A DNA stretch of 64,000 bases from Amoeboaphelidium protococcarum X5. Lineage: Eukaryota; Fungi; Aphelidiomycota. This document shows, one piece after another, positions 2,788 to 17,921 of this stretch. The translations under genes were made by a program, and so were the position numbers. The first letter of the stretch is position 1. Each line of letters opens with the position of its first letter. The stretch is from assembly GCA_023515725.1 (NCBI GenBank), contig JALDTO010000098.1:28615-92614 (forward strand), read 5' to 3'. The notes under the pieces were generated by a model that was not told the DNA's origin, ran no database searches, and saw nothing but the letters and a program-made list of their open reading frames with translations.

Positions 2788-4167
<1,380 letters not shown>

Positions 4168-4260
4168 ACTTGCTATAAACTATACGTAATATATTGCGTA
4201 ATAGGCGATGACACTAGCTTTAACTACAAAGAATGAAAGAATTGTTCCGCTGACTGACTA

Positions 4261-4281
4261 TCTCTGTCTCTCTCTCTCTCT
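4261..4281. repeat. (TC)n microsatellite in the RPT2/APC10 divergent promoter
   Basis: tctctgtctctctctctctct. Confidence 0.7.
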
Positions 4282-4505
4282 TTCAATGGAAGAAACGTGC
4301 AGTGAAATCTCACAGAAGAAGCGACAGCTGAGAAAGTCTTGTCTGACGACTGAATGAACGAACGCGACAAAATTTTTAAACTGTTTCACGCACGAAATAT
4401 TCTCATCATCCGCTGCCTTATACTAACCCCTAAAAAGTGAATTAAAGCTTAGTTTTGTCAATTTCGTTTTATTACTTAGTAATCAACATAGTCTCATAAG
4501 ATAAG

Positions 4506-5276
4506 ATGTTGTCATCGAAAATTGGTGAGATTGAAAGTGCGAATAAGCTGAGTCTGAGATAGTTTGAGAAGGATGTATCTACTAAAGTGTAATGGTCAGT
4601 GAGTTCAGTTAAGGCGGCTTATAATGTTTACAAGTTGATCGATAATGATGTTTCTACGTACTGGCAGTCTGATGGGAACTAGCCTCATGAAATTGTAATT
4701 ACGATGGATCCGCAGGGGAAAATGATTCCTATAAGTAGAGTTTTGATTTATTGCGACTGGAGATTAGATGAGAGCTATTGTCCGCGAGTGATTGTTGTGA
4801 AGGCGGATGGGGTGGAAGTGGAGCGAGTTCAAGTTCCCGGTGATTTAGACGACGAGCAGCGAGACAGTATGGACGCTGATGTTGAAGAGAACGAGCGATG
4901 GTGTGAAGTGGATTTTGGATCATTGTTATAAGATGAAGAAGATTCCATCGATGGTCCATCTACTGCAGATTAAAAATTGTTCAGATGCAACAAGATATCC
5001 TTATCGATTGTTTCAAATCACTAGAATGGAAAAGATTCGCACATTCGGCTGATTAAAGTTTACGCGTCCACTTTGGATGAAACGCGTCAATATGAGGAAG
5101 ATTAAGACTTTCGCATGGTAGATCGGCAAGTTTATCCGTTACAAAGAAATGAACATCCACAGTAGTAGTAGAAGAAATTTACTTAATTGCAAGATTTGCA
5201 GAGACAAGCTGAGGCAGCCCTTGGCACAAGAAAAGGGGAGAGATCATTTGTTGAAAGAATGTCTCTGATTCGCTGA
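4506..5276 (+). CDS. APC10: Anaphase-promoting complex subunit 10 / Doc1 (256 aa)
   Basis: TYWQSDGN[TAG]PH, LDESYCP, NH[TAG]NGKDSHIRLIKVY and the diagnostic C-terminal IR tail (MSLIR-TGA). Confidence 0.93.
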
Positions 5277-5457
5277 TTCTCCATCCCCTGGTCACAATAC
5301 GAGGAGCGGATGTTGTATGAGTGCGGAGGATGTGATAAATGGCTCTTGATATGCTCTTCATTCTCTCTTCTTTCTTCTGTCTATATATCTATTATTTTGT
5401 AAAAATATCTATACTTGTTTCCTAAAAGTTTGCATCCTTACTTATCGTTTCAGAAAG

Positions 5458-6471
5458 ATGATTGTTAGTTATACCTTGATTGCATCTTGCTTGCTCGCTG
5501 CCTCTCTATCTGCCCCAGTGCAAACACCTGATTATGCACCAAAGAATTCGGTCAAAATTGTGCTGGACTGTGCTGCTTATCTGTGCACTAATAATCTGAC
5601 GCTGGCTGACTTGAACAATTCCACTCAGCCAATCTTGCCTAAAGCTGCTTATAACGTTACTGCTCCTGTCTAAAATGGTACCAGTAACAATTCACCTGCT
5701 CCTGTCCATCATGATACCAAAAGTAATTCCACTGCTCCTGTCTAGAATGGCACTGCTTCTGTTATAGTCACCCCGACTGACAATGTCATCCCAGATGTGC
5801 CGCATCAATAACAGCATAATACCACATCCACTATCATTCTGATTCCAAGCTCTACTTCTTCTTCCACCTAGACTCCATCAGCTACTCCAGCTAAGCCAAC
5901 TTTCCTCAGTGTCGGTAACGTGCAAAGCTCTGATCAAGACACTCACACTGGTGGTAGTGGATTTTTCGGTGGAGACTCTGGTGGAGTTGACGCGTCCGGT
6001 AATGGTGTCAACAACAATCTGACAGGCAATGGTTCATAGATTGACAAAGCTGAAGTTGGTAACGCGCTGAATGTGTCGTCTGACGTTAAAACTGGAAATG
6101 GTCGTGGCTGGGGTAGCTCAGGAGGTCAGTCCAATGTGGGTAACTCTATTAACAATAGTGCCACTGGAGCTTAGAACACCACTGTGGGTAGTCTCAATGT
6201 TGGTAATACTATCTCCACATCGTAGGACTCCAATACGGGTAATGCTGGTTCATTTGGTGGCAGCTCTGGATAGATTGAAAATTCAGGTAACGGATAGGAT
6301 AATCACGTCAATCTGGCGCCAGATTAACAGGGCGAAATCAATGGTGCAGTTGGAACGGTCCAAGGCTCCGGCTCATCTACCTCTACCGGTAGCAACGGCG
6401 TGCTCAGTTTTGGCGGCCAGACTGGTTCAGTTAAAGGATCAGGAAATGGTCTCGGAAACACCATCAACTGA
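5458..6471 (+). CDS. Secreted protein: signal peptide, P/T/S linker, four ~48-aa G/S/N-rich repeats (337 aa)
   Basis: MIVSYTLIASCLLAASLSAP signal peptide. Repeats of the form VGN..S....TG..GFFGGDSG....GN. Ends in TGA. Confidence 0.85.
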
Positions 6472-6955
6472 ACACATCATACAAGAGCTTAAAGTAAGTA
6501 TTTCATAGAGATGTTGTGATAGAATGTTAGTAATAAAGAGTTAAAATTGTTTAATCTATAAATCGTAAGTTTCATATTTACTGCAATTCATGGGCAGGCA
6601 TTGTCACGTCTTGTGATTATGCATCGCGCGATATTATATGAACATTTCAATTACTTTTCAATTTATTAATCTCTAGCTAGCATATCACCTGATTTAAATC
6701 AGACAGATGTCTATATTTTTAAAATACGTAGTCTTTGCTAGTACCAGCTATGTCAGAGTCAACTGACTATTGAGTCACGATGGTTTGGTACTCCTTATCA
6801 GCTGAATCGGAGTTGTGATCCAGGAGTCATTTTGATATGCTCCAATAGATTTCTGCTCCAGTCTCTCTTCTTGTCTTTCAACATAACTGATAATTAATTT
6901 GACATAGTTTTAATCTGCTACTATTTGGTAACTATAATAATACCGTGTATTGAAT

Positions 6956-7759
6956 ATGTTAATCAATTCCTTCGCTTTTGCGGTGTGCTCCTGCTTAGTT
7001 GCGCTGGACTCTATCTAGGCTAATCCTATCCCTCAGACTTATGGCGCACAGCCTGCCAATCCAGTGCCAGCACCGGCACCAGTTGCACCTGCCCCATCTG
7101 CTACTTAGCCAAGCGCGCCACCTTAGTAAACACCAGCTGTGGTCCCTCCTGCTCCATCTCTTCCTCAAGCCAAAGCTGAGACTCAGAATATATCCGTTGG
7201 TAATGTGAAGAATGCTCAGCAAGACGCGTCCACTGGTAAATCTGGATTCTTTGGTGGAGACAGTGGTGATGTCAGCAAAGCAGGTAATGCAGTGGGTAAC
7301 AGCTTTACATCCAATGGCTCTACTACTGAGAATGCCGAAGTTGGTAATGTAGCTAATTCCAGCTCCGAGACCAAGACTGGAAATGGGCGTGGCTTTGGTG
7401 ATTCCGGTTCAATGAACTCTGTGGGTAATTCCATCAATAACTCTGCATCAGGTTCATCTGGAGTTGATTTAGGGTCCGTAATTGTTGGTAACTCCATCTC
7501 TACCTCGTAGAAATCGGATACTGGTAAAGGTGGTTTCTTTGGCGGTGACTCTGGAAGCATCAGCAATTCTGGTAACGCGTAGAACAACAACGCAGATTTT
7601 AGTTCTTTTAGCTCTGGCTCTATCGGCTCTGTAAATGCGCAGATTGGTACTGTTAGTGGCTCAAGCTCTGAAATATCTACCGGTAATACTGGCTTCTTTG
7701 GTGGTGGTAGTGGTGAAGTGTCCAACACTGGTAACGGCCTCAACAATAGCATAAATTGA
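6956..7759 (+). CDS. Tandem paralog of the preceding secreted G/S/N-repeat protein (267 aa)
   Basis: Signal-like MLINSFAFAVCSCLVAL, PAPA-rich linker, the same four repeats and the same GNGL.N.IN-TGA ending. Confidence 0.85.
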
Positions 7760-8011
7760 ACGTTAAATGAAACAGAAATATTTGAATTGTGATAATAAAT
7801 AGACGTGGTTTAATTTTTCAATTGATTTTTGTTGAAAAGGTATCGTTGTATCTTGTATTACTGTAACCATTGCTTCTTACTAACTTAGTTCACAAGAATT
7901 GGCAACACTTTATGTCGTTGTAGATCAGCCTGTTTAAGTCATCTCAAATTATAAAGATTCCAAATTTATTAAATATTAAAATGAAAATTAGACAACATTC
8001 TATCAAAGAGA

Positions 8012-9058
8012 TCACAAATTAGTAAAAGGATAAGGTACAATGTACTTGGCATCGACGACGCGTCTGCGGCCGTCATCCTCTTCAAACTGAACAACATAGG
8101 AGTAGCCGCTAGACGTGTTGATATCCAACTTTGGTCCTTCCAAGTATGTCGCTCTATACAGACAAGAAGTGTCCGGGAAGAGGGCGAGAACCACAGCCTG
8201 AGCACTAAACTTCTTCGTACTCTCATCAAGTATGACAATGTTCTTTTCACTTACACGATATCTCTTGCGATACTCAGCGCTAGTCGGATCAGGTTCCGCG
8301 TCTTCAACCTCAAATCTAACTTACTACTACTCACCAGAATTAGTGTAAAAATCGGAATCTTAGGTGGGAGAAAGTTGCTTAATTATTCGAGCCAGAATCC
8401 ATATATCGTCAGCGTTAGACTTATGCGTATTGATCGCCACCATCTAATTAGGCTCCCACTATCCAATGGCATTAACCTTAGTGTCATTTTTACTATCTTG
8501 ATCTAGGCGCCTCTTTTTAATCCGTTCATTACTAGCTGAATTAGGAATCTCTGGCTTCTTGATAGATCCGTGATCTTGGGCATCTTCATCATCTTCACTG
8601 ATATCGCCAAGCAGTAACGCAAGCTGGTTATCAATTGCATTTAGCAACTTATTTTCATCTTACGTCTTTTATATAGCAGAACTGTACAACTTTCTGCACT
8701 TTTTAGAGTACTTGAGTTAATTTTAAATGCCATCGGAGTCTAGCACAGTGCCAGCGGGAGGATACATGATGCCAGGATTTTTGCGCATCTTTGAGTGGAG
8801 CCTGTTCAGTGTAGAGATGTATTCAACAAGCGCAGAGTGACTATCCGATATCTGAGTTAACAATTTCCTTAGCGAGTCATTTCCCTGATTATCTTACTAG
8901 AATTACATACTCTACGGTGACTACTGAGCAGCTGCATTACCTCCACTACCACTACCACCTAGTAAAGACGGATCTATCGTCACTGGAAACAGCGGCTCAG
9001 TATCAGATAAAGTTCGCTTTAATTTATATTGTTGTGCCAGCGGAACTTAATTCGACAT
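8012..9058 (-). CDS. SGF29: SAGA subunit Sgf29 (tandem Tudor) (348 aa)
   Basis: WILARII, FEVEDAEPD, VLALFPDTSCLYRAT, YVVQFEEDD. Frame is continuous from ATG 9058 to TGA 8012 with TAR=Gln. Confidence 0.88.
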
Positions 9059-9686
9059 TGCCCAAATTTACGCCAAGTGTTCAAATACTCAAAATGTTCA
9101 CCAAGATAAGCGGAGATATATACAACACAAAAGGGTTTTGGTAAAGATAAAGATTGAAGGAGAAGAGACGCGTCTCTCGTCAGAGATTATTATGTAAATG
9201 GCTGGCTTTATCTTGAATAATTTGGCGCTTTTTGAAGTAGTTTTGACAAGAAATATATTGTCCACACCAAGAACAAGAACGTAAATTTGCATGTGGAATA
9301 AAGTGTTGATGTCGAACCTGGAGCGAAATACTACCCGACTAGTCTTAATGTGATCCGTACTCATTCATGTCGCAGCATAAGACTACACAAAAAGTTGACC
9401 CTGACCTATGCTTTGATGCGCGTCCTTAGCAACTGATTTATATTTCATTAAATGGTCAGACTAATGCCTCATAATTAATGATTATCTTTCTCTTAATTAC
9501 AGCATATGATACTTGATTAGATCATGCGCCTCTTCTATCCTAATTTCAAACCGAATCTTATTTACTGCCCAGTAAGTCTAAAGCTTTGCTATTTGTGGTA
9601 AAAAATACATATAATTAATGTAATAATTGACTTAAACTATGTAAAAATGCAGTAAATTTCAAAGACAGTGCTTGTGGTCAAATATA

Positions 9687-9747
9687 CAAATGTGTGACAA
9701 TTGTCTCACATGGCTAATCTCAACCTGTGACAATTGTCACACATTTG
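9687..9747. repeat. 61-bp nested-palindrome element, copy 1 (flanked by TA on both sides)
   Basis: CAAATGTGTGACAATTGTCTCACATGGCTAATCTCAACCTGTGACAATTGTCACACATTTG; 19-bp terminal inverted arms, each containing a GACAATTGTC palindrome. Confidence 0.97.
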
Positions 9748-9863
9748 TAAACTATTGATATAAGACTAAAATACAATTTCTCTAAGAAATTTAAAGTACA
9801 TATACTAATTATATGCCTAGCTGAGTACAAAGAAAGTCTTGGTTGAGCAAAGCGCATTGATTA

Positions 9864-9924
9864 AAAATGTTTGACAATTGTCTCACATGGCTAATCTCAA
9901 CCTGTGACAATTGTCACACATTTG
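9864..9924. repeat. 61-bp nested-palindrome element, copy 2
   Basis: 59/61 identical to copy 1, same orientation; flanks GATTA and CA. Confidence 0.97.
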
Positions 9925-10166
9925 CAAGAAGGAGCAGGAAACACTGATAGAGAGATAAGACCCGCAGGCTTTACGCCTAGTTGTCTCCATTATCGATTTA
10001 AAGCACTTTCACCATATTTTCTCCACGTATGGCGGCGACGACAGTGACACAAGCAAAAACTTCACGCGCGTCGGCTTATTACATTTACACCCTGATGGTA
10101 TCGCAAGGCGTGAACCGTTTCAGAATCATCTCATCCTGACAAACTCAATCAACTTCTAATATTGAA

Positions 10167-11858
10167 ATGACACGCTAGTAAGACGCGGCCATAACTATTG
10201 ATGAATCCTCTAAAGAGGATACTGAACTGATAAGTTAATATCTTAATCATCTGACAGTTGAGAGAACTGAATCTGGTATGATAAATTTGCCAAAATTATG
10301 GCAAAAGCTCCCTTCAGCCAAGACTCTGTGGTCACATGACTCTAAATCAAGGAAACTATTTGACAGGTGGAAAAATAGTGAACAAGGAGTGCTTGCAAAG
10401 AAACTAAATAAGATTGAGAATACTTCAGACGTGACAATCGAATTGATCTTGCCTTTTCTGCGTAAGTTGGGAATGGATGAGCCTGTTATCAGTTATGGTG
10501 TGGCGGAGTTCAAAAAGCTGAAACAAGAAACTCAATCTATCACGTCGAGTTCTCGTGTATGCAACAAGGATGTAGTTGAAGGATTAAATCCAAATTCCTA
10601 ATAAAATTCTTCTCTGGCTTCAGAATCCAGTTCTAGTTCAGTTGACACTTCTAGTGCGCCAAAATCTCGTCTTTAGGCATCTTTAACGGATTAAGGTGTT
10701 ATCAAATCGTCGTGTGAAAGTGGTATTCAATAGATTGAGCTGCCTTCCTGTCACGGAGATGAGAGTTTGATATTGCCTTCACATTCCACTGACACTGAAT
10801 ACAAGCTGTCAATTGCCGACAATGCCAATGTACGCAATTACTTGCCAGACGCGTCTTAATTACAGGATGCTAAATGGTTAATTGAGTAAACATTGAGCAA
10901 ACTGCCACAAGTATTGCCAGAGTCTGACTTTCAGAAATTGCTGAAAAAGCCGCCTCATATTGGATCGCAGCGAATTTTGCTGGACAAGGATATTCTCTGG
11001 TAGTTTGGTACTTATTCTGAAGAAGTTTCACCTACGTTGCATGGTATTGTGGCTTGTGTGATGAAGGCTCTGCATCTACCAGTGTACTCTTAGGAAGTTG
11101 GACTGCTTTGCTTTGTTTTCTCTCTTCTATATCCACCAGCCGTTGTTTCAGACCTTGTGACAAGACTTTTAAAAGCCACGGGCGCTTGTGATTTGCCTCA
11201 GTTGCAGGCTGACTGCTTAGTGTTGGAGACTGCTATTGCGCAGATTCCTGGTTGTGGCCACGCCAACTAATTCCATAAAGGCTGGTTAGGCCAGTGTTAT
11301 GTGGTGAACTGGATGGCGTCTTGCTACTACAAGACTCCCCAATCCATCTTTGCCAAGTTGCCTGTGTGGTCTGCCTTTTGCTGCGCAGCGGATCCCAGAC
11401 GCGCGTTCTTGGCAATAACTGTGCTGCACTCGCTGATCGAGTTACCAACTAAGACTTTTGGTGACTTATTGCGCGCTGTATCCATCAAGCCAGGGAATCT
11501 GGTAACTATTGAATAGCTGCGGTCCCCGTTGTTTCTATAAGCAATGGAAATCTGTGATGTTGCCAATCTGAAGCCTGCTTCTCAATCTCTGGATATCTTA
11601 AACTTATTGCAGCGTGGCAATCATACGTGTTTTAAAGTGGATAGTTTAAAGTAACCTCTATAACTCGTCTAATCAAGCACTTTAACTGTGAAAGACATGT
11701 CAAAATGCCATGAATGTGCCGAGGAGAAGATTGCCGAGTGTATGTAGTGTAATTGCGCTTTCTGCTAAGCTCACGCATAATTGCATGCCAATCACGCCAC
11801 AACATTGGAAGACCCTGGCTCAGCTAACAGCTCGATGTCTGCGGCGACTACTCCTTGA
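10167..11858 (+). CDS. Orphan protein (563 aa) with C-terminal B-box-like zinc finger; lies between repeat copies 2 and 3
   Basis: ATG 10167 to TGA 11856-11858 is open only with TAR=Gln. C-terminal CHECAEEKIAECMQCNCAFCQAHAQLH (Cx2Cx7Cx2Cx4Cx2Hx3H). Confidence 0.75.
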
Positions 11859-12161
11859 ATTTGGACACAAGCATGGTCGAATGAAAATTTGTTGTGCTGT
11901 CGAAGCATACAACAATGAACAATGAACAATGAACAAAAAGCTATTATTTGACGACTATTGACTTATTCTTTTCTGTAACTGGATTCAAACAACGGACGCG
12001 TTTATTATTATGTGTTACACTTGGGATGAGGCACCTATAGACGCACTTATCCTCATATGTGCAAAAGGAGCTATTGCTATATATTATTATGTTACCCAAA
12101 GAAGGATTTCTAGATGATATTATGAAATTGAAAAGACGTTTGCTCAAAGGAGAGTCGATTA

Positions 12162-12222
12162 AAAATGTGTGACAATTGTCTCACATGGCTAATCTCAACC
12201 TGTGACAATTGTCACACATTTG
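12162..12222. repeat. 61-bp nested-palindrome element, copy 3
   Basis: 60/61 identical to copy 1, same orientation; shares the GATTA and CA flanks with copy 2. Confidence 0.97.
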
Positions 12223-12514
12223 CACACGAGCTGCCCAAATCAAATTTGGCTCTTTCCTGGTAAAATAATTATTGCAGCACAGTTTAAAACTCGTTCATGA
12301 TAAGATTCTAAATATTAGAAGCTAAAATAATACGCGTGATGGGTGAAAACTCAACGTTGTTTATCACTACTGTACTTTGCTCCTTCTCGTCCTCATTTCC
12401 ATCTTCGTTCGCATCGAATACGACATTCTTTATAGAGTGCAGAAATCATATCAACTTTACTTTTCATCGCCACTGTATCAGAGGATATAATAATATATTG
12501 TCATTTTATTATAT

Positions 12515-13887
<1,373 letters not shown>

Positions 13888-14078
13888 TTCATGTGTGATA
13901 ATAGTATAAAAATGTTCTGATCTGTACTACTGTTACGATGCATGTGTAATACCTTCTCACTATTATCATTGTCTCTCTTTTCTCTTTATCTGATTGATTG
14001 ATTGATTGAATTAATGCAGATCATTTGCAATCTGAATGATTTGATTTGAGATTGAGCGATTGCAACTAATAATTACTG

Positions 14079-14750
14079 ATGATAGATATTATATTACTAT
14101 GGATATGGAGCCTTGTTTTAGCTTTCGTTATAATTTAACACGTGTTTGAGATTGATTTGACATTGGCTGTAAAGTCTATCGTATCATTGTTATAGCCGTC
14201 TGTTGATAATACTCTTGATACCAGAGGGGGCGTCAATGATGCGATTGATAAACTGGAGTTGATGGAATTGACTTAAAAGTATGTTTTGATATTGAGTTAA
14301 AGTTAAGTGGGTGACAAAGTAAATGCTACTGAATTAGCTAAACTTGTGCTGTCATTAGACGCTTTCTAAAAGGCAAAGAATGTTCGTATTTCAGAAAATG
14401 CATTGGATAAAGTTTCTGCCCTTTTCGGCTATGTTAGTGTAAGGCGGTTATCCGATTTGAAGAGAGAAGCTTCCCTCTTAATACGCAAAAGTCGGTATCA
14501 CATACTGCGGCTATTAGCTGCTTTGGAGTAGATGCAAGTTAATGATGGTAGGGATGTGTCTGATGAATAGAGCCAGATCGAGTATTAATATCCGGCGCGA
14601 TTGGATTCGCCGATCAGCATTGCTGATAAAAAGGATTTGGATCACTTTGAGAGTTGTTGCTCAACAAGTGATGACACTTCAGATCAAGCTGATAAGGATT
14701 ATTCCCATTTAAATTTGTATAAAATTGATGACATGAAAATTATAGATTGA
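14079..14750 (+). CDS. Hypothetical protein with N-terminal TM or signal anchor (223 aa)
   Basis: MIDIILLWIWSLVLAFVII...; open to TGA 14748-14750 with TAR=Gln. No family recognised. Confidence 0.55.
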
Positions 14751-14927
14751 TTTTACGTTTTACGAGTTTTACGGGTTTTGTTTGGAGTTCTGCTTTTGAT
14801 GACGATGAACTTTGATGCGCCGTCTAATTGGAGGTGCTCTTCACTTCAAAAGCATAATAACGTACAATATGATCATAATGTACAGGCAAATAAAAATACA
14901 ATAGGCATTAAATGCAAAAAAAAGAAA

Positions 14928-14999
14928 CTCTCCGTCTGGGAATCGAACCCAGCTTACCCGCGTGACAGGCGGGGGTACTAACCAATATACTAACGAAGA
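14928..14999 (-). tRNA. tRNA-Asp(GUC)
   Basis: TCTTCGTTAGTATATTGGTTAGTACCCCCGCCT-GTC-ACGCGGGTAAGCTGGGTTCGATTCCCAGACGGAGAG, 72 nt with A/B boxes, followed by an oligo-T Pol III terminator. Confidence 0.97.
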
Positions 15000-15203
15000 T
15001 TCGCTTTTAGAGCTGATTTGATGAACTGTTTTCGCAAAGCAAGCCATATCCCAATCAATACTCATAAGACTTTCTATCACTCTCTAATATGCTGTTATGC
15101 ATACTTACTACGTAGTTGTAATAGGTATAGCTGGTACAGTAGGTAAATACAGCCACATAGAAAATTAAGTGCAGATATGAAAAACAAAGTTCTGTAATAG
15201 TAG

Positions 15204-16430
15204 TCATTCATTATCATTAGTGTGCTTTCTTTTTAACTGCACACGAGTTTTAACATCATGCTAGCCTGCGCCCTTGGACTCTTACCGCCGCTTCCAGTTG
15301 CGGCGTACTTTATCCATAAACTGAGAGTTGGAAAGACTTTCTATAGACACAGATTCATCAATACTCTTCATGATACGCGGCACAATACTGATATGATTCG
15401 GCGTAGTCTTATCATCTCTGAATCTCATAAACTTCCACTTCTTCTCCCTGGTCTCCCCATCCACTATCACGCGACACTCCACTATCCTCCCATCTGGAGA
15501 ATCTTGCTTAAACTGCTTAATCAATTCTCGATCTTCTTCAGGATCCAGCAGCAATTCTCCATACTCTTCATATCCATCGCCGTTATGACTGAGAATGTCA
15601 AGTTTCCACAGCGGTTTCTTCTACACTCTATCAAAGGATAGCCGGAGTTTAAAGTCTATGCTATTCTGATCAGCAGGCTTCCACTTGAGCATCCCATCAC
15701 ATGTTCTGCCAATTGTATAAGGCGCGTTAACATTGGTAAAAATCAGTCCATCATTCTCATGCCCCAGTCCACTTTCAATTTACTTCATCACGGAGGGGAT
15801 GTCGTACGCAAAGAACATTTGTTTAGCCTCCAGTTGAAGCGATTAATGTGGACTCTTCATATGATCCTTCTGGTACTTTTAATACGGTCTCAATACAAAA
15901 TCCTTCAAGTAGCCAAGACGAGTAGAAAGAGGTCGCTGAGCGAGAACTTTAGTATTGTACATCACACAGTCAAAAGCCAAGTACTTGTAAACCGCTTCAC
16001 CATCAATCTCATGCTACACCAATTCACCATCCAGCAGAGTCTCGTTAATCAACAGTAGCTTATTAGGCTGACTATCATGGCTAGGAAATACCAGTCCGGC
16101 AAGTCCGTACACTTACATTTTTCTATCCAAAAGATACACATCCTATCTGATTACACCTTGCGGAAATTCTTCATTCTATACAAAATTCTGTACAATATAC
16201 ATAAGATAGCGAACACCATCACTCTTTTCACACACATAATAGTCTTCATGTTGCAAGGACTAGAGGTGAGCTTGCAAAAATGAGATAGGTTGAGCACCTG
16301 GAAACTTTCGCAGTCTTTAATCACGATTATCATTTTCATTCAGCCCCAGTAAAAGCGCATTAACATGGCGGATTATTTATTTTGCCACTTTATCTTCCAC
16401 TTGAATAGAGTTTGGTGGGAGATTATTCAT
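15204..16430 (-). CDS. CEG1: mRNA capping guanylyltransferase, fungal-type stand-alone enzyme (408 aa)
   Basis: FPGAQPISF, motif I CEKSDGVRY, HENDGLIFT, LKWKP, WKFMRFRDDK. Confidence 0.93.
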
Positions 16431-16838
16431 AATTTATTATTTAATGACTATATATCGATGAAAAATTGAATAATACTCTGAAAAATATTCAATGAAGAAT
16501 GGAAGCAGGTGATTTGATTAACACAATCCAAAAGATATGCGAAGAAGTCGCCGGCGTAGTTAAGTAAACTTGTATCGAACGATGCAGCACTTGATGAAAA
16601 AGCATATATAGCACGACCAATGAATGAGGACTTGAATAATTTATATCTGTAGATTTCTAAAGAGTTTAGCTTTCACTGTATAGGCTGAACGCGTACCTAA
16701 ACTGATTTGAGAACGTGGAAATTGATTTCTCTTCGCTTTGCCAGAAGTTTCTCACGCGACAACTTTTTAAGAACTGTTACCTGTCTGTCTTTGGTAAACT
16801 CTTTATTGCTATAGCCTAAGGAATATATATAATTTGCA

Positions 16839-17921
16839 ATGGGCCAATTTGTAAGTAAATAGCCCGAATAAGATGGAATAAATGGTCTTCAATAAGCGAA
16901 TAAACTTGTTAAAAGACAAACCATAGGACGTTCTTCTAATGACACTGTGCAAGATTCCAAAGTCTGTGAGATGATGAAACAATTGAGCATTGAACGGCCT
17001 CTTCCTAGAACACCGCCAGCTATGGACAAGAACCTTCCTCCGATTCAAGATTCTCACCCAGATGTATTACATTAGCTGCTAGTCACCATACCTAGTCTGT
17101 CAAGCGCTTTAAAAGTTCACATCTCTGCATCAAACACGGTTGATGATGTTATGCGAATGGTTCTCAGAAGCAAAAAGGTTCGCAATGGCGGTTTACTGAG
17201 CGATCAAGTTGAATTTGTTGCGCAGTGGATCGTATATCCTAAGCAAGCATCTGTAATGTACGGCGACACTCTTAGAGAATCTAGATGCAAGAAGAGATCT
17301 ATACAAGAGTTGAAACTGTCAGGCGAGTAAATACTTTTCCGAGCGATAATGGACGGTTGGACGCGGATGTCTCACTATATCGTAAGTGGGAATTACGTAA
17401 AGCTCAAAATGATTTTGTAAGAGAAGAGCGCGTCTGATCGATATGTGCTTCCAGATGAAGCTATAACTTCTGCGCAACTTCCCTTATGTCCGAAGACTGC
17501 CGTCAAATCTAAAGTCATAAAGAAATAGAAAAGTATGTAACCTTCGAAACGCATATCAAACATATCTGGTAAAATCAATACGCGCTTACATCGACAATCG
17601 CTTGCTCTGTTAAAAAACTAAAAGACTTCAATTTAATCCTACTATAGATTGCTTATTCACTACTAGGGAGAGTAGGACGAGTGTCGGCGAGTGAGTCTGC
17701 ACATAACTGATGATCTGAATGGCTGGTAGTGTCTTCATATGGCTATGCGAAGGTTTAAGCTTTATGATCAAGATCAGTTCGCTATAGTTTGCCGCCAATA
17801 GACTGGCACTGATGTTTAGTAGAGTGTACTAAGCAGCGACACCTAAGTATTACGATTTGTATAATAGCATCCCAACGGCAAGTACTTTGTTATTAAGAAG
17901 AATGCTGCCGGTGATATATGA
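16839..17921 (+). CDS. Hypothetical N-myristoylated protein, possibly with two Ras-association/ubiquitin-like folds (360 aa)
   Basis: Starts MGQFVSK (MGxxxS). LKVHISASNTVDDVMRMVL and RVSLHITDDLNGWQCLHMAMRRFKL are RA-like patterns. Ends in TGA. Confidence 0.6.

Follow-up and report, generated by a model that had tools for sequence, protein, structure and literature searches.

In this study, we analyzed a window of 64,000 nucleotides from the alga-killing parasite Amoeboaphelidium protococcarum X5 (assembly GCA_023515725.1, contig JALDTO010000098.1, positions 28,615 to 92,614 of the forward strand), in which three direct copies of a 61-bp double palindrome stand between the genes SGF29 and VPS4, with a gene for a 563-amino-acid (aa) protein between the second copy and the third. 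Our sequence comparisons give about an even chance to the interpretation that the copies and the enclosed gene represent a conserved module of a gene and its binding sites, perhaps bound by the gene's own product and reshaped by homologous recombination. The 61-bp copies would be the local members (A-type) of a long-established double-dyad element family that accompanies a single aphelid-specific gene family. Each element has two near-palindromic sites with the core GACA-WT-TGTC, whose centers lie 33 bp (three helical turns) apart on either side of a related asymmetric core; these dyads are predicted to be bound by a dimeric protein, for which the adjacent gene's product is the simplest candidate. 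Gene and putative operator would form one module, with the enclosed gene as the partner of the element and not its cargo. The number of units would shift through homology-driven recombination, by deletion between neighbors or, alternatively, by gap repair of a broken third copy, in which the upstream pair would serve as the template and a repeat-spacer-repeat segment would be inserted. Such recombination between units would explain why there are three copies here and four in strain MP228.

The three copies and their coordinates were verified in the 64-kb window, with shuffles of the window as the control, in which not even one match to the 61-mer occurred. As the original prediction had described, the copies lie on the plus strand in the same orientation at 9687–9747 (A1), 9864–9924 (A2), and 12162–12222 (A3), and are pairwise identical at 59–60 of the 61 positions; A1 differs from A3 solely in its first base, and A2 carries one private T (ATGTTTGAC). 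Each copy contains two dyads built on GACAATTGTC, one palindrome within each inverted arm, that flank an asymmetric core, and their centers are separated by 33 bp (9693 and 9726 in A1), an architecture that had also been read correctly. The inverted arms themselves measure 21–24 nt per copy; those of A1, which has TA...TA flanks, are 24 nt long including the TA. Between A1 and A2 lies a 116-bp spacer (S, 9748–9863, plus strand), and the interval between A2 and A3 measures 2237 bp and holds one open reading frame (ORF), in agreement with the predicted 116 bp and approximately 2.24 kb with one gene. A2 is located 243 bp upstream of the ATG of the enclosed gene, and A3 lies 304 bp past its stop codon and 297 bp ahead of the VPS4 ATG. 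The extra flanking bases attributed to the second and third copies are indeed common to both (GATTA on the left and CA on the right), which makes a 68-bp unit, and outside this unit no flanking homology aligns among the copies.

As single strands, the copies form hairpins much stronger than those of shuffled sequences (z of about -7 to -9; -8.6 for A1). Among the Rfam families, including miRNA precursors, the best score was 27 bits against gathering thresholds of 70–90, corresponding to sub-threshold hairpin look-alikes only. A mini-ORF with an ATG begins in each repeat (9690–9752, 9867–9945, and 12165–12260), and both dyads encode Cys-Asp-Asn-Cys in the same frame, probably as a by-product of the palindrome. 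In the runs X5-X7, which are labelled as another organism, contig depth over 8800–13200 of the window varies more than 100-fold: approximately 5 in intergenic sequence, 27 across the enclosed gene and all three repeats, and 200–700 over VPS4. Such a profile resembles that of RNA taken from an infected culture, in which case transcripts traverse the repeats.

Related elements are present beside paralogs of the enclosed gene. On metagenome scaffold L067, a 46-bp element (610–655) lies approximately 400 bp ahead of the ATG of a 41%-identical paralog, in the orientation of the gene. It has two CAATTG-centered dyads 33 bp apart and a core that differs by one base, and its alignment score is 50, whereas 1000 shuffles reached at most 39 and 120 kb of other genuine sequence at most 33. 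In MP228, a related element (scores 56–62) follows the stop codon of each 42%-identical paralog at loci L068, L069, and L070 by approximately 255 bp. The B-type half-site is GGGACA, compared with GTGACA in the A-type, and the opposite arm is changed to match in both dyads, with the 33-bp spacing preserved. At least 12 B-type copies with 94–100% identity occur in the X5 genome. One stands before and one after the paralog at C154:122.6–123.9k, two follow the paralog at C154:301.8–303.1k (189 bp apart), and two stand before and one after the paralog on C162; C164 carries a diverged B-type copy.

The elements come as one to three units, 177–190 bp apart, located a few hundred bp ahead of the start codon of the gene and/or past its stop codon. 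L070, with at least two tandem units 190 bp apart upstream of the gene and one after it, is arranged like the window locus. At every locus read, the dyads keep their 33-bp spacing and the element its orientation along the gene strand, and at three X5-genome loci the element strand equals the gene strand as judged from coordinates and strand only. Unit numbers differ between the two strains at each locus that can be compared. The elements are approximately 70% identical beside proteins that are only 42% identical, which argues for constraint, and 90% of the dyad cells pair, compared with 12–64% when the partner is slid. The enclosed gene had been regarded as cargo; since related elements accompany its paralogs, it is better described as a regular partner of the element.

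The gene has also been at its locus for a long time. The published A. protococcarum description mentions a duplicated genome (PMC10608142), and we found a second SGF29–VPS4 locus (homeolog) on contig C244, where SGF29 is 88–92% and VPS4 92–94% identical to the window. The middle of the enclosed gene has a 72%-identical counterpart at the corresponding position of the C244 interval, in the same orientation. In a protein-level comparison, this copy matches residues 216–437, spread over three reading frames, and it is therefore a frameshifted pseudogene. The A-type gene has thus resided at one locus since before the split of the two subgenomes. No decayed repeat was detected in the C244 interval, where the best local alignment was no better than those of shuffles. 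The gene is frameshifted and the repeats are absent, suggesting that gene and sites decayed together. The original prediction had proposed integron-like imported cargo and had itself named persistence of the inner gene at this locus without the repeats as the finding that speaks against it; the pseudogene (residues 216–437) persists in the homeologous interval in just this way, and the proposal is not supported.

The enclosed gene (10167–11858, plus strand) encodes 563 aa under a code in which TAR is read as Gln; it has 21 in-frame TAA/TAG codons and is open only under the TAA/TAG = Gln code. It was searched in pieces and then as a public full-length protein, which exists with identical length and sequence. 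It had been called an orphan gene, a description that does not hold: piece searches found at least four paralogs in the A. protococcarum X5 genome (44–65% identity), and two A. protococcarum assemblies contain named paralogs. Every named member comes from these two assemblies and is annotated as a hypothetical protein, and the family is small and aphelid-specific. A search of 1.8 billion representative proteins returned only four clusters for the enclosed protein, one of whose cluster mates is KAI3652178.1 from Amoeboaphelidium protococcarum. The paralog on C162 is found as two protein pieces 5.6 kb apart (C162:375115–380736) rather than approximately 1 kb, which suggests interruption by an insertion of approximately 4.9 kb; its public annotation is a shortened 453-aa protein.

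The protein has a structured N-terminal domain (approximately residues 10–120), a helical middle, and a C-terminal Cys/His finger. The full-length 563-aa protein had no Pfam match at E < 0.1. The N-terminal domain approaches KilA-N/APSES (Pfam E = 0.068, which misses the cut-off), and its language-model neighbors are KilA-N at a similarity of 0.91, a resemblance confirmed neither by the full-length Pfam search nor by fold comparison. In a structure model derived from seven sequences, only residues 10–120 are predicted with confidence (pLDDT of about 80), and comparison of the model with solved folds gave no match above Z 4.7. The single-sequence fold was poor, and Foldseek and VIA searches yielded no clear fold. 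The reading of the C-terminal finger as a B-box falls below the threshold of the B-box model: the PF00643 profile has twelve matches in the genome, none of them at the enclosed gene. Neither a catalytic domain nor conserved catalytic residues were seen in the family protein.

We infer from these data that a protein binds the dyads, what that protein is, and what its binding brings about. The element is kept beside genes of approximately 42% identity and is lost where the gene died, which points to a functional partnership. The placement of two dyads on the same helix face would suit a dimeric DNA-binding protein. The half-site changes between gene branches suggest that the binder may be the family protein itself. 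Several observations weigh against such a module. No DNA-binding domain, nor any other, is recognized in the protein (no Pfam match; best fold match under Z 5), and its binding is a prediction. A recent spread within the locus would also account for three copies that are nearly identical. At C154:175.4k and C154:215.9–216.3k, arrays with two or three units stand where no family gene was detected, and the paralog locus L066 has no flanking element. Covariation in the dyads amounts to a single change affecting both sides among six sequences, and shuffling shows it to be non-significant. Furthermore, coordinates were the sole basis for judging the paralog loci of the X5 genome.

Genes for DNA-binding proteins that lie beside arrays of their own dyad-symmetric sites are known from plasmid Rep/iteron systems, EBNA1/oriP, papillomavirus E2 sites, and autoregulated repressors. 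As in those systems, the gene described here has several palindromic sites that are paired in helical phase and differ in sequence between related genes. Unlike those sites, the units here are nucleosome-sized (177–190 bp) and chromosomal, flank the gene on either side, and differ in number from strain to strain; no domain is recognized in the protein, whose binding is predicted. A description of this gene-plus-double-palindrome module was not found in the literature searched, nor was any work on transposable elements or gene regulation in this lineage next to Fungi. If the partnership is true, the 563-aa protein and the 61-bp site, whose paired dyads are spaced by three helical turns, would make a compact and testable system. 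Its specificity would come in no fewer than two natural variants, with the half-sites GTGACA and GGGACA, and a family so far annotated solely as hypothetical proteins would gain a function. The evidence does not support a eukaryotic integron, which would be the more spectacular claim.

Comparison of the two strains revealed how the copies change in number. The MP228 locus (L065; assembly GCA_023515745.1), reached through an exact-protein look-up, reads repeat, 116-bp spacer, repeat, gene block, repeat, 116-bp spacer, repeat, and has four copies. Its counterpart of A1 has two core changes. MP228 copy 3 has the left flank of A3 followed by the spacer, and copy 4 has the spacer end on its left and the right flank of A3. 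A3 is accordingly chimeric, joining the left flank of MP228 copy 3 to the right flank of copy 4, and the strains differ at the window locus by exactly one spacer-plus-repeat unit (177 bp). The spacer S is single-copy in the X5 genome and present twice in MP228. The two MP228 spacers differ at 3 of 116 positions, two of which are private to the second spacer, indicating that the four-copy form is not brand new; it may be older than the three-copy form. The original prediction had called for a strain comparison in search of an empty allele; the comparison shows recombination-prone direct repeats, with one unit gained or lost between copies. The gain or loss of cargo units that it had proposed was not borne out, as the strain-variable unit consists of the 116-bp non-coding spacer and a repeat and contains no gene.

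Public sequencing runs agree with the two assemblies. In four runs, the contigs break at the repeats in the same places, and the ratio of spacer to inner-block depth is 0.9 in the source run and 1.7 in an MP228-type run, which shares its variants with MP228 (16 inner-block differences). These are Logan contigs with k = 31, shorter than the 61-bp repeat, so that a precise excision or deletion product makes no new word; no joints were seen in them. A presence/absence difference of the inner block between strains, considered from contig depth, was rejected, because the second spacer in the MP228-type run and homeolog contigs on the flanks explain the depth. Block 9665–12914 is 0–2% diverged between X5 and MP228, and the intergenic sequence to the left of the first copy is 4–7% diverged. 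This low divergence was considered as a sign of a young cassette and rejected, since the divergence is a mosaic over 13.5 kb and another 3-kb block is equally similar: between window positions 4165–17649 and L065, 0–1% blocks alternate with 5–17% blocks within a few hundred bases. The patchy divergence is mosaic ancestry and no evidence for a young cassette.

A repeat-spacer-repeat segment in one strain and a single repeat with chimeric flanks at the same site in the other resemble the collapse to a solo long terminal repeat (LTR) or ectopic gene conversion. The repeats here, unlike those of solo-LTR collapse, are just 61 bp long and palindromic, and hairpin-induced breaks may therefore drive the events. 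The same behavior could come from functionless, hairpin-forming, satellite-like units, fragile palindromes that multiply and contract locally through template switching and unequal recombination and stand near the gene family only because duplicated segments share their descent. The second and third copies with their co-copied flanking bases, the strain-variable unit numbers, and a breakpoint within a dyad (L070, see below) are as expected of such units, and at an unrelated locus with the same 16-mer a 32-bp local duplication created a second dyad. We nevertheless regard this explanation as improbable: spacing, core, and orientation are kept beside genes of 41–42% identity and in another organism, whereas neutral DNA at the SGF29–VPS4 locus is already no longer alignable between the homeologs.

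The unrelated locus is C154:90969, a perfect match to the 16-bp dyad of the element (L008:1469–1516 versus L011:1501–1516; C154:90.9k and C162:291.8k). One homeolog carries the 32-bp local duplication, which gave rise to a second, degenerate dyad 32 bp away, and a 448-bp segment around the 16-mer has three copies in the genome. A transposon at this locus was considered and rejected, since the surroundings are ordinary intergenic DNA that has a homeolog and includes a paralogous segment of 448 bp.

The L070 locus contains a head-to-tail junction. It consists of L069 positions 3602–6055 preceded by L069 5937–6126 and a further partial unit, such that the 2525-bp L069 unit is linked end to start through 6 bp of microhomology (TCAAAT). 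The breakpoint on the right is inside the second dyad, and the TCAAAT junction lies 63 bp past the element, outside it. In sequence terms this arrangement carries the signature of a circular or tandem intermediate. Taken with the strain differences, it documents that short palindromic repeats reshape loci in a duplicated genome.

The junction raises the main alternative, a new mobile element, in which the family gene would encode an unrecognized transposase or recombinase, the double-dyad elements would be its terminal sites, and movement would involve an intermediate that is circular or concatemeric. Elements stand to either side of the gene in the window and at L070, B-type genes at least 90% identical occur at two unrelated loci and their homeologs, solo arrays exist, and unit numbers differ between strains at every locus compared; the 2525-bp head-to-tail junction, with its right breakpoint in the second dyad, would be a product of such movement. 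As the element is near-palindromic, direct terminal repeats also give perfect inverted ends of 19–22 bp. The alternative is unlikely all the same, as the junction at TCAAAT lies 63 bp beyond the element, L068 and L069 carry an element on one side only, no catalytic domain or residues were seen, and the A-type gene has been at one locus since before the subgenome split, with few copies per genome. Were it true, it would represent a new transposon type. A broader form, which we consider doubtful, is a new class of eukaryotic mobile or self-maintaining module, in which a protein without a known catalytic fold would recognize co-evolving paired palindromes at both ends of its gene, with the unit spreading via circular or head-to-tail intermediates.

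The dimensions of the locus recall a known type of transposon end. Tc1/mariner elements of the Sleeping Beauty type have inverted repeat/direct repeat (IR/DR) ends, terminal repeats of about 230 bp with two transposase sites each. The MP228 repeat-spacer-repeat modules are similar, being 238 bp long with sites 177 bp apart and standing on both sides of one gene. In contrast to IR/DR ends, they are direct rather than inverted, no DDE transposase is present (Pfam empty), TA is found on both sides only at the first copy, and copies are few.

The original prediction likened the copies to recombinase sites and stated that no recombinase is encoded in the window, and none was found there; genome-wide, there is a single weak match to Phage_integrase, along with a young Crypton family. 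The copies might accordingly be lox/FRT-like sites for a recombinase encoded elsewhere, for example, a Crypton tyrosine recombinase. They do resemble loxP, FRT, dif, and attC in their inverted arms, asymmetric core, and direct orientation, and the strain difference of exactly one unit between sites is the gain or loss that such sites permit. The young Crypton family has at least 11 identical copies, with four TGTGAC motifs at the right end; the first motif is part of an 11-mer shared with the repeat arm. The explanation is very unlikely on several counts. The gene was not imported, and homologous recombination gives the same products. The Crypton 11-mer match is not significant (122 of 500 shuffles score as well), and inverted TGTGAC pairs are not enriched above background in the genome. 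Tyrosine-recombinase sites have 11–13-bp inverted arms around a 6–8-bp crossover region (PMC3212892), far from the arms of 19–24 bp around 17–23 bp found here, and each inner dyad consists of short arms around a symmetric CAATTG. Furthermore, no dedicated recombinase was identified, and the enclosed gene is a resident, unlike in the systems of loxP, FRT, dif, and attC.

The Crypton-type element itself spans L058:1–1577 (C146:497217–498793) and has at least 10 further copies, 99–100% identical. It comprises the C-terminal part of a tyrosine-recombinase ORF, a 10-bp inverted repeat with a 9-bp spacer, and four co-oriented TGTGAC motifs in its last 80 bp; its right end reads ...GGGATAATT, and the flanks start with TAAT-like words. 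Three or four co-oriented TGTGAC motifs also stand just upstream of ordinary genes (L053:1488–1558 and L055:1501–1545, both on the reverse strand), one of them followed by a TATA-like box. A link between the Crypton and the repeat was considered and rejected, given that the 11-mer match lacks significance, that inverted TGTGAC pairs do not exceed background, and that TGTGAC triplets occur upstream of ordinary genes too.

The A-type 61-mer is confined to its locus. At BLAST sensitivity, the 23.6-Mb assembly contains only three copies, all within 2.5 kb, and across the same 23.6 Mb the 19-nt end with up to 3 mismatches had no further match above the control count. An exact-pattern scan of metagenome, viral, and GTDB/prokaryote contigs gave no match to the 61-mer. 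The copy-number search proposed in the original prediction therefore has a divided outcome: at high identity there are three copies private to the locus, and diverged relatives do exist elsewhere.

These counts bear on the simpler alternative offered there, an ordinary tiny Tc1/mariner-type miniature inverted-repeat transposable element (MITE) or a composite of such MITEs. The copies share with Foldback/Stowaway-type MITEs their short length, perfect terminal inverted repeats, strong hairpin, and, at the first copy, TA...TA flanks, and the genome holds at least 17 DDE_3 (Tc1/mariner) transposase remnants. They differ from these MITEs in being undispersed, in lacking an autonomous partner, in their co-copied flanks, and in their tie to one gene family, with which the diverged relatives are also associated. 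TA stands on both sides at the first copy only; the second and third copies have TA...CA, lacking the right-hand TA, and have flanks in common. With three copies only, all within 2.5 kb, and no end match with up to 3 of 19 mismatches above background, the MITE alternative is largely refuted, and we consider it extremely improbable.

The genes on either side of the module confirm the predicted setting of the repeats between SGF29 and VPS4. SGF29 (8015–9088, minus strand) has a Tudor domain, and the VPS4-type gene (12519–13950, plus strand) has MIT, AAA, and lid domains; both lie outside the module, and their domains were searched exon-wise or piece-wise without a joined gene model. A 2767-bp element is present as two inverted copies, 99.9% identical and approximately 43 kb apart (L050:1195–3960 and L052:6720–9486; C98:711194–713959 and 756719–759485). 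It belongs to a family distinct from the TGTGAC Crypton and contains no TGTGAC motif.

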